From: Paragordius varius
Taxonomy: Eukaryota > Animalia > Nematomorpha
Reading direction: 5' to 3'
DNA: 15,693 nucleotides
Assembly (NCBI GenBank): GCA_964247055.1
Contig: OZ176061.1
Span: 1-15,693 of the forward strand
In this document: piece by piece, positions 184 through 15,691 of the stretch
Layout: every line of letters begins with the position of its first letter
How positions within the stretch are numbered: the first letter of the stretch is position 1
The notes under the pieces: model-generated
Told to the model about the DNA's origin: nothing
The model's database searches: none
Seen by the model: only the letters and a program-made list of their open reading frames with translations
Program-made: the position numbers and the translations under genes

Positions 184-1062
184 CTAAATTAATTTCCTGT
201 ACAACATGGTTATTATGATTAACTTATAATAGTAGAAGTAAGCAATTCTAGCTGCAAAGACAAACCCCATAGCAAATACTAATTTTCTGTAGTTTAATAT
301 CTTAATTAACATAAATACTTTTATAAAAAACATTAATCTTATAGGAAAACCCATCATATTAATTATTAAAAATACAAATAATGTAAATACAAAGCTTTTT
401 ATTAATATGAATTTTATTACTCCTCTGATTTTTAAGCATAAAAAAATAAAAGTTAAAATCAACATAAAATAAAATAAACTAAATATAATATAAAATCCTT
501 TTCTCACAAAAACAGAAAATCTTATTCAAGAAGAAAAATACACAGAAGTCATAATTATTATACCAAAAACGGAATCCGAAAAAAAAGCCCCTAAAACTCC
601 AATAAAATTACTGGATTGGCACCCACACATAACTGGTATGTCTCATCAACAAAAAGAAGAGACTGGTGATTCTTTGCACCACAAAATATAAAGCAGGATT
701 GGCACCCATTTCTGAAAAGAAGAGACTGGTGCAAAGAATCACCAGTCTCTTCTTTTTGTTGATGAGACATACCAGTTATGTGTGGGTGCCAATCCTGCTT
801 TCACTATGAAAACTAGTGAAAGCAGGATTGGCACCCACACATAACTGGTATGTCTCATCAACAAAAAGAAGAGACTGGTGATTCTTTGCACCACAAAATA
901 TAAAACAACAGAAAATCAAGAATTCTTTTTGTTGATGAGACATAAAAAAGTAAATACTAACAAATTTAATACTAATCCTTGCCATAAAAATAAAAATCTT
1001 GAGCATCTCATTATTCATAAAAAAGTAACAAAATAAATTATAAATCTAAATAACATAAGAAT
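184..1062 (-). CDS. nad2: NADH dehydrogenase subunit 2 (292 aa; start ATT 1062 or ATG 1056)
   Basis: Table 5 translation is open through the repeat region and ends at TAG 184. Motifs include LWQGLVLNL, YFVVQSITS, KAGLAPTHNW and FQKWVP. Confidence 0.9.
613..944. repeat. nad2 compound inverted/direct repeat network
   Basis: Inverted repeat 727-806/814-893 (80-bp arms). Direct copy 613-692 = 825-904. Short copies at 690-708, 715-731 and 923-944. Confidence 0.93.
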
Positions 1063-3268: not shown

Positions 3269-3341
3269 ATCTAATTAGTATAACAATATGATTACATAGG
3301 AGTTTCAATCCTAAAATTTCCATTTTTAAAGAAATTAGATT
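3269..3341 (+). tRNA. trnE: tRNA-Glu (TTC)
   Basis: Acceptor ATCTAAT/ATTAGAT, anticodon arm TAGGA-GTTTCAA-TCCTA. Confidence 0.85.
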
Positions 3342-3343
3342 TA

Positions 3344-3413
3344 TTCATAATTAGAGATATAAAAACTCTGTATTTAAATTCTAAATTTAACGCATTAATA
3401 TGCTAAACTATGA
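3344..3413 (-). tRNA. trnL1: tRNA-Leu1 (TAG)
   Basis: Minus strand: acceptor TCATAGT/ATTATGA, anticodon arm TTAAA-TTTAGAA-TTTAA. Confidence 0.85.
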
Positions 3414-4500
3414 AAATAAAAGGGGCCCTTTCGTACTACCTTTTAAAATATAGATAAAAGATAGGAACCGATCTGGCTTTCACCGATCTGAACTCAAATC
3501 ATGGATTATTTTAAAAGTCGAACAGACTTTCTTACTTTTTTACTGCAAAAAGTAGATCTAATAATTCAACATCGAGGTCGCAATCACTGTAAAGTATGTG
3601 GCCTACTGTTACTGTATTACGCTGTTACCCCTGGGGTAACTTTTTCTTATTCTCACACAACTCAACTATGTGGATCAAATTGAAATTTAATTTTTTGCAT
3701 TGATTGCCCCAATCAACCTCACAAACTTACAAGGAGAGCTCCCAGGGTCTTGCCTTCTTTTTATATACACGTGTATTTTCACACGTATTACAATTTCAAT
3801 TTTTATAAATATTTTTCCATTAGTAGTTTTACCTTTCATCCTAATTTTTCAATCAAAAAATAAATGATTATGCTACCTTCGCACAGTCAAATTACCGCGG
3901 CTACTTATATTCAAATAACGTAGAGCAGGTTAAATAATTAAAATTCCTAATTAATAAGTTTTTGATAAACATTCTACAAATTGAAAAGAATAATATTTAC
4001 ATCTGTAATAATTATAACAAATATAAGTACATAATTATATTTCTACTAATTTTCACAAAATAGCTTTAATTCTATTTATTTTAACTTTGTTATAATTATT
4101 ACAGATGTAAATATTATTCTTTTCAATTTGTAGAATGTTTATCAACATTAATTTATAAAAAACTATTATTTTAAGAAATTTTATCCTTACTATACTTTTA
4201 AGTCTCTTAAACCTCATCTATAAATAAAATAAAGCTCACCCTTATTTTAAGCCTAAATAAATTTAAGCACCTCCCAAGGGAGATAATTTTTACAAAGCCA
4301 GTTATTTGTAACCGTAAAATTATCTTTTCTAAAAATTTTATTCAAAGTATTTTCAACTACATATCTTTTAAATTTTTATCTCTTTCACATTTTCTGGTTG
4401 TCAAATTTATTACTTACACTTATAAAATCGTGTTGCAACAGGAATATAATTATTTTCAGCATTTTCATAACTAGATTTCTCAAACTATCGATTTTAATTT
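3414..4500 (-). rRNA. rrnL: Large subunit (16S) rRNA; ends approximate
   Basis: Reverse complements of conserved 16S motifs: CCGATCTGAACTCAAATCATG (~3482), TTCAACATCGAGGTCGCAA (~3565) and TATGCTACCTTCGCACAGTCAAATTACCGCGGC (~3869). Confidence 0.9.
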
Positions 4501-4504
4501 CTAT

Positions 4505-5250
4505 GCTAGAAGTCCTTTTTCAAAAAGACTAACTTTGTTACGACTTATCCTTCTAAGGAGTGACGGGCGATATGTGTATAGTGAAGAGTAATTTTCAAAA
4601 ATTTTTTCTTAATATATTTTTAATTTACTTTCAAATCCTAAATTGTTTGTAAGTATTTAACTACAAACTAAATTATAAAATCAGTCCTATTGTGCCCCAC
4701 CAAACTATTATAACACTGTATATTGATTTGAATTGATTTAATAAAATAAATTAAATAATTTCTTTATTTTTTAACAACTATATACAAGAGTTTACATAAT
4801 ATAAGGTTTATAGCGTACTATCTATTTAATTTGGCTAAACCCTTTGATTTAATTCACTACTGCCAATTTTTTAAGTTTCCTTTTTATACTACTATAGTTA
4901 TATGTAAATTCAATAGTAGGGTATCTAATCCTAGTTTTTAATTAACTTTTTCTAAATCAAGGATTTAATATTTTTATTTATAATCAATTTTACCTTTATT
5001 ATAATAAGAAATCCTTTTTAATTTTTACTTAACAAGTATTTTCCCTTTTTGTATAACCGCTAATGCTGGCACAATTATTCTTAAGAGTATTTTACCTACA
5101 AACAGATACCCTCGTTTACGTTATGATGTCTTACTTCACACATGTTGAAAAACAGCTTTACCTGTTAGTATATTTACCTACTTGTGAGTGCTTATAAGAA
5201 TTTAGTAAAATATACTTCATAAATCAAAACTAAATTTCTCTTTATGATGA
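4505..5250 (-). rRNA. rrnS: Small subunit (12S) rRNA; 5' end inferred from the adjacent trnC
   Basis: Minus strand carries GTGCCAGC...GCGGTTATAC (~5052-5073), CATATCGCCCGTCACTCC (~4557-4574) and GATAAGTCGTAACAAAG plus the terminal helix (~4510-4548). The 5' boundary is uncertain. Confidence 0.85.
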
Positions 5251-5283
5251 AAAGGGTATGCCTGTGAAAACAGGCTAGTTTTG
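5226..5283 (+). tRNA. trnI: tRNA-Ile (GAT), mirror copy in the left arm
   Basis: Exact inverted copy of 5340-5397. Confidence 0.55.
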
Positions 5284-5309
5284 AGCTTGCAACTCTTCAC
5301 TATACCCTT
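5251..5309 (-). tRNA. trnC: tRNA-Cys (GCA), D-armless; copy in the left arm of the palindrome
   Basis: AGGGTAT-AGTG-AAGAG-TTGCAAG-CTCAA-AACTA-GCCTG-TTTTCA-CAGGC-ATACCCT. The anticodon stem has only 3 Watson-Crick pairs. Confidence 0.55.
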
Positions 5310-5313
5310 AATT

Positions 5314-5372
5314 AAGGGTATAGTGAAGAGTTGCAAGCTCAAAACTAGCCTGTTTTCACAGGCATACCCTTT
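5314..5372 (+). tRNA. trnC: tRNA-Cys (GCA), mirror copy in the right arm
   Basis: Exact inverted copy of 5251-5309. Confidence 0.45.
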
Positions 5373-5397
5373 TCATCATAAAGAGAAATTTAGTTTT
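5340..5397 (-). tRNA. trnI: tRNA-Ile (GAT), D-armless
   Basis: AAAACTA-AATTTC-TCTTT-ATGATGA-AAAGG-GTAT-GCCTG-TGAAAA-CAGGC-TAGTTTT. It lies downstream of the nad1 stop on the same strand. Confidence 0.75.
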
Positions 5398-5417
5398 GAT
5401 TTATGAAGTATATTTTA

Positions 5418-6341
5418 CTAAATTCTTATAAGCACTCACAAGTAGGTAAATATACTAACAGGTAAAGCTGTTTTTCAACATGTGTGAAGTAAGACATCAT
5501 AACGTAAACGAGGGTATCTACCACGAGCTCACAAAAAATACAAGCAGGGGAGTATGAAATATCATGATATTTCATACTCCCCTGCTTGTATTTTTTGTGA
5601 GCTCGTGGTAGATACCACGAGCTCACAAAAAATACAAGCAAAAAATATAATAGCTATGTATTCAGCTATGAATACAACTGCAAATACTCCTGAATATATT
5701 TCTACATTAAATCCGGATACTAACTCTGATTCTCCTTCTATTAAGTCATAAGGGGTTCGATTTGTCTCTGCTAAAGCACACATTAACAGTAAAGCTATTA
5801 GGGGTACTAGTACCCCTAATAGCTTTACTGTTAATGTGTGCTTTAGCAGAGACAAATCGAACCCCTTATGACTTAATAGAAGGAGAATCAGAGTGAATAT
5901 TAAAACTAACTCATAAGATACAGCCTGAGTTAAAGCTCGATATCCACCTAGCAAAGAATATTTAGAATTTGATAATCACCCAATAAACAAAATTATGTAA
6001 ACACCTAACCCTAACATCACCATTACAAATAATATCGTAAAATCCATTATTAGAGCGAAAGATGCTTGGGTTAATACAACTTCGAAAAGGACCAAATAAA
6101 GTCCTAGTGATAGGACTGGTGCAGCCATTCATAGACGCAGTAAAACTATTCTCAAAAAGAAGCTTCTTTTTGAGAATAGTTTTACTGCGTCTATGAATGG
6201 CTGCACCAGTCCTATCACTAGGACTTTATTTGGTCCTTTTCGAAGTTGTATTAACCCAAGCATCTTTCGCTCTAATAATGTAAAAAAGGATATACCCACC
6301 AAAAGAGATGCTTGGGTTAATACAACTTCGAAAAGAACCAA
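5418..6341 (-). CDS. nad1: NADH dehydrogenase subunit 1 (307 aa; start TTG 6341 abutting trnL2, or ATT 6344)
   Basis: Motifs [44 protein letters not shown] and WARGSYPRLRYD. TAG at 5418-5420 and the frame is continuous in table 5. Confidence 0.93.
5513..5640. repeat. nad1 palindrome 5513-5616 (104 bp) plus an overlapping hairpin 5583-5610/5613-5640
   Basis: Centre TCATGA at 5564/5565. Direct repeat 5519-5546 = 5613-5640. Confidence 0.93.
5723..5894. repeat. Perfect 172-bp palindrome in nad1
   Basis: Centre ACTAGT at 5808/5809. Confidence 0.95.
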
Positions 6342-6666: not shown

Positions 6667-6724
6667 ATTATGGTGTTCTATTTTCTTTATGTAACAAAGA
6701 TGTTTTTAATTAAACTAACCATAA
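6667..6724 (-). tRNA. trnV: tRNA-Val (TAC), T-armless
   Basis: TTATGGT-TA-GTTT-AATTAA-AAAC-A-TCTTT-GTTACAT-AAAGA-AAATAGAAC-ACCATAA. Confidence 0.85.
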
Positions 6725-7448
6725 ATAAATACAGATTTTTTTTATTCTATATTATTTATGTTAAAATCTTGTCCGTCGGACAAGATTTTAACATAAATAA
6801 ATACAGATTTTTTTTATTCTATATTATTTATGTTAAAATCTTGTCCGACGGACAAGATTTTAACATAAATAAATACAGATTTTTTTTATTCTATATTATT
6901 TATGTTAAAATCTTGTCCGTCGGACAAGATTTTAACATAAATAAATACAGATTTTTTTTATTCTATATTATTTATGTTAAAATCTTGTCCGACGGACAAG
7001 ATTTTAACATAAATAAATACAGATTTTTTTTATTCTATATTATTTATGTTAAAATCTTGTCCGTCGGACAAGATTTTAACATAAATAAATACAGATTTTT
7101 TTTATTCTATATTATTTATGTTAAAATCTTGTCCGTCGGACAAGATTTTAACATAAATAAATACAGATTTTTTTTATTCTATATTATTTATGTTAAAATC
7201 TTGTCCGTCGGACAAGATTTTAACATAAATAAATACAGATTTTTTTTATTCTATATTATTTATGTTAAAATCTTGTCCGTCGGACAAGATTTTAACATAA
7301 ATAAATACAGATTTTTTTTATTCTATATTATTTATGTTAAAATCTTGTCCGTCGGACAAGATTTTAACATAAATAAATACAGATTTTTTTTATTCTATAT
7401 TATTTATGTTAAAATCTTGTCCGACGGACAAGATTTTAACATAAATAA
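6720..7448. repeat. Tandem array of 10 x 72-bp units (plus a partial unit), each with a 24-bp-arm hairpin
   Basis: The unit repeats exactly every 72 bp from 6721 to 7440. The only variable base is the hairpin centre (T,A,T,A,T,T,T,T,T,A). Confidence 0.97.
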
Positions 7449-7449
7449 T

Positions 7450-8982
<1,533 letters not shown>

Positions 8983-10635: not shown

Positions 10636-11421
10636 ATGATAACTAACCCTTTTTATCTGGTTTCACCGTCCTCTTGGCCTTTATTTGTAGCAATAAGAGT
10701 TGCAGCTTTAGCTGCAACTCTTATTGCTACCATGTGAAAAACCTCTTGGCCTTTATTTGTAGCAATAAGAGTTGCAGCTTTAGCTGCAACTCTTATTTGC
10801 TGGGCAGTAGATCTTTCACGAGAAAACAATTCTACAGGTCTAATATCTTTAAATTTAAAATCTTGTATAAAATTTAGTTTTATGTTGTTTATTTTATCAG
10901 AAATTATATTCTTTATATCTTTTTTTTGAAGTTACTTTCATTTTAGATTAAGCCCCGATCCTGAAATTGGATCTTCTTGACCTCCTATAGGAGTAATCCC
11001 TATTCCATTTTTTGAAGTACCTCTTTTGAATACTCTGATTTTATTATCTAGAGGTGCTTTGATTACTTGGGCTCATCATTCAATATTCTCCAGAAAAAAT
11101 GCTATTTCTATCTCTCTTTTAACTTTATTTACTGTAATTTTAGGAGTATACTTTGCTTTATTGCAAATGGAAGAATATACCTCTTCTTTATTCAGTGTAA
11201 ACGATAGTTGTTTCGGTAGAGTATTTTTCACCACTACTGGTTTTCATGGTACTCATATTATCATTGGGTCATTAATACTTCTTGTTTCTCTGCCCTCATT
11301 TTTAATTTCAGGTGATTCTACTATCTCTATTACTTTTTTTGAGCTATCTGCCTGATACTGACATTTTGTCGATGTAGTATGACTATTTTTATTCTTAATT
11401 TTCTACTGATGGGGTGGGTAA
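10636..11421 (+). CDS. cox3: Cytochrome c oxidase subunit 3 (261 aa)
   Basis: SWPL, DLSRE, LSEIMFFMSFFWSYFH, WPPMG, LNTLILLSSG, TTGFHGTH, WYWHFVDVVW. Confidence 0.95.
10670..10797. repeat. cox3 56-bp direct repeat at a 72-bp offset, each copy carrying a hairpin
   Basis: 10670-10725 = 10742-10797. Hairpins at 10687-10730 and 10764-10797. Confidence 0.95.
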
Positions 11422-12073: not shown

Positions 12074-12132
12074 AGAGCAGTGTATTTGCTTACTGCTAAT
12101 TAGCTTCAAAGATTTACAATCTTGCTGCTCTA
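12074..12132 (+). tRNA. trnS1: tRNA-Ser1 (GCT), D-armless
   Basis: Acceptor AGAGCAG/CTGCTCT, loop CTGCTAA, T-arm AAGAT/ATCTT. Confidence 0.82.
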
Positions 12133-12268
12133 TAAGTCTTTTCGTCTTAACCACTCAACTAGCTAGTTGAGTGGTTAAGACGAAAAGACTTATTATCTGC
12201 TCTATAAGTCTTTTCGTCTTAACCACTCAACTAGCTAGTTGAGTGGTTAAGACGAAAAGACTTATTAT
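12125..12268. repeat. 72-bp tandem duplication at the trnS1/nad4L junction, each copy with a 62-bp palindrome
   Basis: 12125-12196 = 12197-12268. Palindromes at 12132-12193 and 12204-12265. Confidence 0.95.
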
Positions 12269-13838: not shown

Positions 13839-13897
13839 GTGAAGTGAGCGTAAATTGTGATTTTACTAAATCTGATTATTATATTCAGAACTTCACA
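13839..13897 (+). tRNA. trnH: tRNA-His (GTG), D-armless
   Basis: Acceptor GTGAAGT/ACTTCAC, anticodon arm GTAAA-TTGTGAT-TTTAC, T-arm TCTGA/TCAGA. It lies between nad4 and nad5. Confidence 0.85.
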
Positions 13898-14041
13898 ATC
13901 CTAATTTGAATAAAGTCGGATAACTGATATATGATGGGTATAAATATCAAACATATTACTGTGAGTGTTGCACTCACAGTAATATGTTTGATATTTATAC
14001 CCATCATATATCAGTTATCCGACTTTATTCAAATTAGGATT
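13897..14041. repeat. 71-bp-arm hairpin at the nad5 5' end
   Basis: Arms 13897-13967/13971-14041 with a 3-nt loop. Confidence 0.95.
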
Positions 14042-15691
14042 TTCTCCTTTATAATAACTAACTTAAAGTTTGTTGATATATACATTAACTATGACCCTTT
14101 AAGATTTTCTTTTATATTAAATTTAATAGTAGTTTTTTTAATAATTATTCTTTACAGATTTTTTTACATAGAAAAATCTGACTTTAAACTAGGGTTTATG
14201 GGTGTAACTAGTGTTTTCTTAATTTCTATAGTAATTATAGTTCTGTCTTCTTCCCTACCAGTTATTTTACTCGCTTGAGACTCACTGGGCCTTTCCTCTT
14301 TTTTATTAGTTTTGTTTTACAATAATTACTATAGAGAAAATAAAAGACTGGTCACATTAGTTATAAACCGTTTAGGTGACGCTTGCCTTATCATCTCTTT
14401 TCCTTTAATTTTTTCAAAATATGACGCTAATATAAGTTTAATAAATTCATTAATATGTAATTTTACATCTGTGGACTCCTTAATTCTAGTATTACTAATC
14501 ACAGCTTCTTTTATAAAAGCAGCTCAACTACCATGAAGTGCATGGCTGCTAGCAGCCATGGCTGCTCCAACACCTATTTCTTCACTTGTTCACTCTAGCA
14601 CTTTGGTGTGTGCAGGAGTCATTCTTTTCACCAAAGTGCTAGAGTGAACAAGTGAAGAAATAGGTGTTGGAGCAGCCATGGCTGCTTTAGTTTACATTAG
14701 TTTTATAATATCATCTATCTCGTCTACAAAAAATTTTGATCTAAAAAAAATCATTGCTCTAAGTACCATAAACCAAATATCTTTCTTATTAATTATCACA
14801 ATAAGTGTAAACCAGTATTTTATAGTATTTCATATGATTAGCCATGCTGTTTTTAAAAGAAATACTTTTATAATAGCCGGTTGCTTATTTCATAACTCAA
14901 AAAGATCACAAGAATACCGTTTTAATTCATCTAATAGAATTAGTAATTATTCAGTATTCCTACAGAGAGCTTTTATATCTCTATACTCTCTATCAAGACT
15001 GCCGTGATCGATAGGTTTTTACTCAAAGGAGCAAACTTTGTCTTCATCTTTATGAAAGGAGACTGCTCCTTTCATCTCATTGATGCTATTCTTTTTCATT
15101 TTTTACTCTTTTTTCTACTCATATCTTATTATAGCATCAATGAGATGAAAGGAGCAGTCTCCTTTCATAAAGATGAAGACAAAGTTTGCTCCTTTGAGTA
15201 AAAACCTATCGATCACGGCAGTCTTGATAGGGGTTTTTAGAATTTCAGGAGCAAACTTTGTCTTCATCTTAATAAGTCCTTCTCTCCCCTCGTCTTCCTC
15301 TCTCCTTTCACTGTCTCTAATTTTAAGACCTTTTATCACCGGGAAGTATATCTACTTGAGACACTTTCAACCGTTTTCAAGGATAGTAAATACAAATTAC
15401 TATCCTTGAAAACGGTTGAAAGTGTCTCAAGTAGATATACTTCCCACCCTTCTAGGATTTTCATTATTATCTCTACTCTGTCTCAGAAAAAAGAGAGTAG
15501 AGATAATAATGAAAATCCTAGAAGGGTGGGAAGTATATCTACTTGAGACACTTTCAACCGTTTTCAAGGATAGTAATTTGTATTTACTATCCTTGAAAAC
15601 GGTTGAAAGTGTCTCAAGTAGATATACTTCCCACCCTTCTAGGATTTTCATTATTATCTCTACTCTCTTTTTTCTGAGACAATTATTTTAA
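13931..15691 (+). CDS. nad5: NADH dehydrogenase subunit 5 (586 aa from ATG 13931; in-frame ATC at 13898 also possible)
   Basis: [63 protein letters not shown]. Continuous to TAA 15691. Confidence 0.95.
14541..14686. repeat. nad5 inverted repeat 14551-14608/14629-14686 plus a 20-bp palindrome 14541-14560
   Basis: 58-bp arms with a 20-nt loop. Confidence 0.93.
14990..15270. repeat. nad5 inverted repeat 14990-15089/15131-15230 plus a 24-bp third copy at 15247-15270
   Basis: 100-bp arms with a 41-nt loop. 15027-15050 = 15247-15270. Confidence 0.93.
15341..15681. repeat. nad5 3' triple overlapping inverted repeats
   Basis: Arms 15341-15389/15397-15445 (49 bp), 15341-15479/15494-15632 (139 bp) and 15479-15576/15584-15681 (98 bp). 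Confidence 0.94.

Follow-up and report, generated by a model that had tools for sequence, protein, structure and literature searches.

The window, the whole 15,693-nt stretch of DNA that we analysed, comes from an animal assembly of 110.5 Mb in 44 contigs, in which it is the mitochondrial contig, C44. It is A+T-rich, with a GC content of 29.9%. Genes were called with aragorn in mitochondrial mode and as open reading frames (ORFs) under the invertebrate mitochondrial code (table 5); a bacterial-mode tRNA scan of the window found no tRNA. The gene order was trnF; trnW-nad2-trnM (−), followed by trnQ, trnY, trnT, trnP (−); nad6, cob, trnS2 and trnE; trnL1, the rRNAs, nad1 and trnL2 (−), then a non-coding region; cox1, cox2, trnK, trnD, atp8, atp6, cox3, trnG, nad3 and trnA; and trnN, trnS1, nad4L, nad4, trnH and nad5. 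For every gene found, this order agreed with that of Parachordodes, Gordionus and Gordius (PMC10380579). Gene trnR, expected between trnA and trnN, was not called by aragorn. An Rfam search of positions 3300–5600 returned only sub-threshold microRNA-like matches to hairpins and one tRNA; Rfam offers no model that could be used to find mitochondrial small rRNA. From its gene order, we regard the window as a complete mitochondrial genome, that of a gordioid horsehair worm (Nematomorpha, Gordioida).

Gene nad2 is flanked by trnW (76–146, −) and trnM (1063–1133, −), as in the published Gordioida order (PMC10380579). Its open frame occupies 187–1077 of the minus strand (297 codons, table 5) and runs as a single ORF through all of the repeat copies described below. 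The gene is 879–916 nt long, compared with 972 nt in published hairworm nad2. The ND2 frame carries six TGA codons; database searches used TGA-free pieces, and the full translation was compared locally. Five TGA-free pieces had no match in Pfam, and a 58-residue piece had none among PDB sequences. Likewise, nad2 pieces had no match in a word-indexed protein search (5.8 billion), and a 113-residue C-terminal piece had none in a full HMMER search of 1.84 billion representatives. A PF00361 profile search of the whole genome recovered nad4, nad5 and one nuclear copy, and did not find nad2.

Because the database tools gave nothing for the nad2 pieces, we relied on a local outgroup comparison. Two unrelated invertebrate mitogenomes, L016 (NCBI assembly) and L018 (ENA metagenome), served as outgroups and negative controls, and the ND2 translation was run with phmmer against every table-5 ORF in them. 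Both were rejected as hairworm relatives, given their different gene order and lack of palindromes; a search with a nad4 piece for other hairworm mitogenomes returned only distant ND4s (identity ≤42%). The best matches of the ND2 translation were the ND2 genes of the outgroups, with E-values of 3e-10 (L016) and 0.038, against a small ORF set. The alignment was colinear with both outgroups across residues 13–289, through all copies, and the conserved C-terminal part of ND2 continued in the same frame beyond them. That is, because database matches were absent, the identity of ND2 rests on position, the ORF and one local alignment with two outgroups.

Repeat anatomy and readings of the nad2 core

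A sequence-only reading of this DNA had described the nad2 core as a mosaic in which one segment of about 80 nt is translated in three ways. Our results agreed with this description, in that nad2 is a single intact ORF with a colinear ND2 alignment. Copies of parts of one 94-nt unit (814–907) made up 304 of the 332 bases in 613–944, and such copies, in both orientations, account for a third of nad2; the features are listed in Table 1.

Table 1. Coordinates of nad2 and of the repeat elements in its core.
Feature	Positions	Strand	Reading and remarks
nad2 coding region	184–1062	−	stop codon 184–186; start somewhere below trnM
Direct copy 1 of unit	613–695	−	shifted frame, reads YILWCKESPV...; variable ND2 stretch
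Fragment of unit start, 19 nt	690–708	−	reads WVPILL, same frame as copy 2; QK-x-x-P motif
Fragment of unit, 17 nt	715–731	−	reads PVSSF, same frame as copy 1; hairpin with 740–756
Perfect inverted copy of unit	727–806	−	reads KAGLAPTHNW...; K-G-x-P-x-H-x-W motif of ND2
Loop of 80-bp hairpin, 7 nt	807–813		
Master unit (copy 2 plus 11-nt left extension)	814–907	−	reads LYFVVQSITS...YVWVPILL; KYFxxQS motif region
Inverted fragment of unit core, 22 nt	923–944	−	fourth frame, reads LCLINKKN

The direct copies 613–695 and 825–907 differed by one mismatch over 83 nt; the direct copy reported from sequence alone (613–692 = 825–904, offset 212) was exact over its 80 nt. The inverted copy that the same reading had noticed corresponds to an inverted repeat of 80 nt, 727–806/814–893, with 100% identity, a 7-nt loop and phase 1, in which 814–893 is the right arm. 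A second inverted repeat, 613–681/727–795, extends over 69 nt with 100% identity and is in phase 2, and the two repeats have 727–806 as their common middle arm. Because they differ in phase, their outer arms, which make up a direct repeat with an offset of 212 nt (2 mod 3), are read in different frames. The shorter recurrences claimed earlier were also recovered. Positions 690–708 equal 819–837 (19 nt) at a spacing of 129 nt, and WVPILL therefore occurs twice in frame, at residues 81 and 124. The 17-bp hairpin 715–731/740–756 was present, as was the 22-bp copy at 923–944 (identical to 750–771), which we found in addition to be an inverted fragment read in a fourth frame. The predicted fold of the nad2 mRNA segment had an energy of −203 kcal/mol (z = −22) and contained an 80-bp stem; a predicted 22-bp stem, 923–944/637–658, enclosed the whole region, including the 80-bp stem.

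The 80-nt unit is translated in three frames inside nad2, twice in the sense direction (two frames) and once antisense, and four of its six frames are stop-free. All three of the translations originally quoted occur in the 297-codon ORF under the invertebrate mitochondrial code. Because 923–944 is read in the fourth frame, a 22-nt core is decoded in four ways (FFLLMSHT, YVSSTKSS, SSFCWWDM and LCLINKKN). The peptide PVSSF occurs twice in the ND2 protein.

Placed on outgroup ND2, copy 2 aligned on the KYFxxQSxxS motif and the inverted copy on the K-x-G-x-x-P-x-H-x-W motif, so that the conserved-motif assignments made for these two readings held in the two-outgroup alignment. The 19-nt fragment aligned on the QK-x-x-P motif, exactly 30 residues past the K. 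Copy 1, whose peptide is odd and Cys/Trp-rich, aligned on a poorly conserved stretch, where both outgroups were ~10 residues shorter. As judged from this alignment, copy 2 and the inverted copy appear to encode the two best-conserved motifs of ND2. Because the ND2 alignment is colinear, removal of any copy would shift the frame or lose a conserved motif.

We gauged the chance of such open frames with a control set of 994 windows of 80 nt, all in frame, drawn from three repeat-free genes of this mitogenome (cox1, cob and cox2). The shifted sense frame was open in 6.9% of the control windows, the relevant antisense frame in 11.9%, and the two together in 0.3%. The earlier reading had remarked that the segment is constrained in three frames at once without a stop codon, a state shared by only 0.3% of these ordinary coding windows. 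Genome-wide, the mirror arms of 22 long repeats were all open; the estimated probabilities that ordinary coding sequence has an open mirror image, in the frame that each repeat dictates, give a product of ~1e-17, and we therefore concluded that the arrangements seen are a selected subset.

Palindromes elsewhere in the mitogenome and their nuclear copies

A census of perfect inverted repeats with arms of at least 15 nt and loops of at most 100 nt found 72 across the mitogenome. The control region contained 31 and the remainder of the genome 41, of which 39 fell within protein-gene spans. The share of the gene lying in arms was 87% for nad6, 62% for nad1, 46% for nad5 and 31% for nad2; cox2 had one perfect inverted repeat (33 nt), and cox1, cob and atp8 had none within these thresholds. 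No perfect inverted repeat of at least 20 nt was found in the L016 and L018 outgroup mitogenomes. Each palindrome was made from local sequence, and the arms of different genes were unrelated. The PF00361 profile matched nad4 (profile 3–289) and nad5 (1–286) straight through their palindromes. The seven longest repeats genome-wide were in phase 1 or 2. Phase-3 perfect repeats of 71 and 98 nt (13897–14041, 15479–15681) were located at the ends of nad5, where coding limits are uncertain, and part of their arms may be outside the true coding sequence.

Several other repeat structures were observed in the window. A perfect 416-bp palindrome at 5104–5519 has 208-nt arms and no spacer; one arm holds the last 33 nad1 codons (with the conserved PRxRYD...WK motif) and trnI, and the other, by position, holds trnC and the start of the small rRNA. 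Within 5225–5398, genes trnC (5251–5309, −) and trnI (5339–5398, −) flank the palindrome centre, and because they are on opposite sides of it they are partly mutual reverse complements; aragorn calls both genes on both strands. In the control region (6720–7451), some ten tandem units of 72 bp, each holding a hairpin with 24-nt arms, form an array that stops ~10 nt before the cox1 start (~7462). A 45-nt element at 138–182, at the trnW 5' end and the nad2 tail, recurs at 15512–15556 and 15325–15369 in the nad5 3' end and, inverted, at 15410–15454 and 15597–15641; it spans the circle junction. Exact tandem duplications of 72 nt, each a palindrome, were found at 12132–12265 (trnS1/nad4L boundary) and 10670–10797 (cox3).

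The nuclear contigs contained copies of some of these sequences. A 2.4-kb copy of nad4-nad5 (C2:8694432–8696799) was ~95% identical to the mitochondrial sequence and retained the nad5 palindromes; three palindromes persist there in a decayed state, with self-complementarities of 97%, 88% and 84%. Because these palindromes are present but decayed in the nuclear copy, they existed in the transferred DNA and were not made by contig assembly. Comparison of this copy with the mitochondrial arms, over ~240 arm pairs, gave 5 paired complementary differences and 3 single ones; at 4.3% divergence, ~0.15 paired complementary differences are expected by chance. We read 5 paired against 3 single differences as the mark of joint change of the arms within the mitochondrial lineage.

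The search of the nuclear genome turned up nad2 only as short pieces; those derived from the nad2 unit lie on C4, C5, C3 (two) and C7. At the site where the three mitochondrial copies now have C (633, 845; G at 775), four of these five fragments have T; the remaining one, 100% identical and presumably the youngest, has C. The simplest reading is that a T-to-C change spread to all three nad2 copies, and the four T-bearing fragments are possibly not independent insertions. Of the three readings, the change replaces Asn with Ser in one and Ile with Val in a second, and leaves the amino acid of the third unaltered. Such nuclear fossil copies are an internal record of joint arm change and could be used to time and dissect the conversion mechanism.

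Some nuclear loci were themselves composite. Those at C4:978556–978648, C5:8805287–8805344 and C3:7967724–7967859 are short mosaics of different mitochondrial hairpins; one mosaic joins a control-region repeat to the nad2 unit, and another joins a nad3 hairpin, a nad4 unit and the nad2 unit. In two independent nuclear loci the nad2 piece begins at 813/814, where the loop of the 80-bp hairpin meets its right arm, and fragment ends at the loop edge hint at breakage at hairpin tips. An older locus (C3:10669561–10669646, ~90% identical) joins the reverse complement of ~673–704 directly to ~628–685. The present nad2 has no such fold-back junction; the locus may represent a former mosaic state or a rearrangement that arose in the nucleus.

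Origin of the mosaic and alternative explanations

We consider it highly probable (about 0.88) that 613–944 is a real part of an intact nad2, overwritten without lengthening by copies of a local 94-nt unit. Beyond the observed repeat anatomy, the open frame through all copies and the colinear homology of the readings to ND2, we infer a process in three parts. Copies of the local 94-nt unit would overwrite nad2 sequence and leave gene length unchanged; selection would retain an arrangement only if all of its readings are tolerable and free of stops; and intramolecular conversion, by template switching or repair on an extruded hairpin, would keep the copies identical. Intramolecular conversion of hairworm repeats has already been proposed (PMC6649704), and conversion is supported here by nuclear fossils whose differences affect both arms, or all three copies, in the same manner. 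Filtering of overwrites by selection would account for the strictest motifs being in the phase-1 pair and the third reading in the expandable loop.

Under an artefact of assembly or amplification, the repeats would be fold-back or template-switch chimeras and the real nad2 would contain the unit only once. The 100% identity of the arms and the zero spacer of many palindromes do resemble fold-back chimeras formed in vitro. However, collapsing the 212-nt repeat shifts the frame and deletes a conserved ND2 motif, and the assembled frame is continuous into the conserved C-terminal part. Chimeras would also have to leave long mirror arms open in all genes (joint P ~1e-17), keep gene lengths normal and the PF00361 matches colinear through palindromes, and spare cox1, cob and atp8; moreover, an independent nuclear locus bears the same palindromes in decayed form, and the phenomenon has been validated experimentally in other hairworms. 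The decayed palindromes of the nuclear copies, together with the paired changes, make an assembly artefact very unlikely and indicate that the arms evolve in concert.

We also judged it quite unlikely that the hairpins are real but untranslated, being cut from the mRNA or skipped by ribosomes like the bypass elements of Magnusiomyces. The predicted 80-bp perfect stem in the mRNA would be a severe obstacle to ribosomes, and published RNA-seq coverage falls at hairpins, but both 80-nt arms encode the two most conserved ND2 motifs, spaced as in the outgroups, and dropping one arm or the whole hairpin loses a motif. Nor is nad2 longer than published hairworm nad2 (879–916 versus 972 nt). Decay of nad2 as a pseudogene, with repeats accumulating in the absence of selection, would fit the lack of an ND2 family match for the pieces in database tools and the odd, Cys/Trp-rich peptide of copy 1. 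Yet a 297-codon frame is open in 70% A+T DNA with two extra unit frames open (P = 0.003), the ND2 alignment is colinear over residues 13–289 with conserved motifs included, only short nad2 fragments were found in the nuclear genome, and complex I is active in other hairworms, so that we regard a pseudogene as extremely unlikely. Both a unique sequence at 613–692 and a non-functional ND2 are spoken against by three things: the argument from reading frames, the alignment with ND2 and the nuclear copies.

The hairpins themselves are most likely a self-perpetuating by-product of mitochondrial DNA maintenance, merely tolerated by selection on the protein; the authors of the published hairworm work favour the view of a parasitic by-product (PMC6649704). 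Two further ideas would take the nad2 mosaic beyond what has been described, but are more doubtful: that the three full copies and three fragments, in both orientations and four reading frames, are homogenised together, and that hairpin tips are cut in vivo. If true, conversion would act on more than simple two-arm hairpins, and hairpin-tip cutting could both drive conversion and let fragments reach the nucleus. One 94-nt unit, in sense, frame-shifted and antisense form, specifies approximately 100 ND2 codons, the two best-conserved motifs among them, and the nad2 mosaic shows how far a membrane protein gene can share sequence with itself. Because the principle has already been published for hairworms, its value is that of a well-assembled further, extreme example.

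Comparison with known systems

Mikhailov et al. 2019 (PMC6649704) described 110 perfect inverted repeats in conserved regions of the mitochondrial protein genes of four hairworms, with both arms encoding conserved residues and with cytochrome oxidase genes lacking long repeats. They reported that overlapping repeats create direct repeats, that overlaps of different phases occur, and that a nad2 hairpin carries paired substitutions between two individuals (PMC6649704). Direct repeats from overlapping repeats are known in nad1 and nad6 of Gordionus alpestris (PMC6649704, PMC10380579). A nad6 system in which three overlapping repeats yield two direct repeats has also been described (PMC6649704 supplement). 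The palindromes were validated by nuclease enrichment, RNA-seq, an ND1 western blot and rotenone-sensitive respiration; cDNA and genome showed no systematic differences by RNA-seq, and there was no wide-scale editing (PMC6649704). Transcription and translation proceed without hairpin removal in Gordionus alpestris and Parachordodes pustulosus, and RNA-seq coverage drops at hairworm hairpins (PMC6649704, PMC10380579). Nikolaeva et al. 2023 (PMC10380579) added a fifth hairworm species, with repeats in nad2.

We concluded that the nad2 mosaic is an instance of these published hairworm coding palindromes. As in the described species, perfect arms are located in intact genes, both arms carry conserved residues and the gene is not lengthened; the gene order is the same, nad genes are repeat-rich and cox1 is repeat-free. 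Arms show paired changes, seen here via nuclear fossil copies. According to the published rule, hairworm repeats longer than 65 nt are in phase 1 or 2 (PMC6649704, PMC10380579). Of the two long repeats in nad2, that of 80 nt is in phase 1 and that of 69 nt in phase 2, but phase-3 repeats of 71 and 98 nt, at the ends of nad5 where coding limits are uncertain, depart from the rule. Our mitogenome also differs from those of described hairworms in its GC content (29.9%) and in the 72-bp tandem array of its control region, known hairworm control regions having no tandem repeats (PMC10380579), and it probably belongs to a different hairworm. Its largest palindrome (5104–5519) measures 416 bp, compared with a published maximum of 284 bp. 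Decoding of a unit in three or four frames follows from the overlap of repeats of different phase. In the hairworm palindrome literature that we consulted, we found no explicit mention of a single unit being decoded in as many as three or four frames.

Palindromic sequence inside protein genes has counterparts in other systems. The byps of Magnusiomyces capitatus mitochondria are insertions that break the protein alignment; they are kept in mRNA and skipped in translation. They resemble the nad2 repeats as palindrome-like sequence within mitochondrial protein genes, whereas the nad2 repeats replace sequence one-for-one and carry conserved motifs. We rejected a bypass element as a candidate because the 80-nt hairpin had no insertion in the ND2 alignment. 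The palindromic elements of Rickettsia are a dispersed mobile family that adds peptide segments in frame and decays over time. There too, palindromic DNA is translated within a protein, but the hairworm palindromes are local in origin, still perfect and encode homologous positions. A dispersed mobile palindromic family, like that of Rickettsia or the hairpin elements of sponges and fungi, was rejected because the arms were local and unrelated between genes. Lastly, viruses and organelles have overlapping genes and antisense coding, in which, as in the nad2 mosaic, one segment is constrained by several frames, including the opposite strand; unlike overlapping genes, however, the nad2 readings come from separate identical copies, all within one polypeptide.
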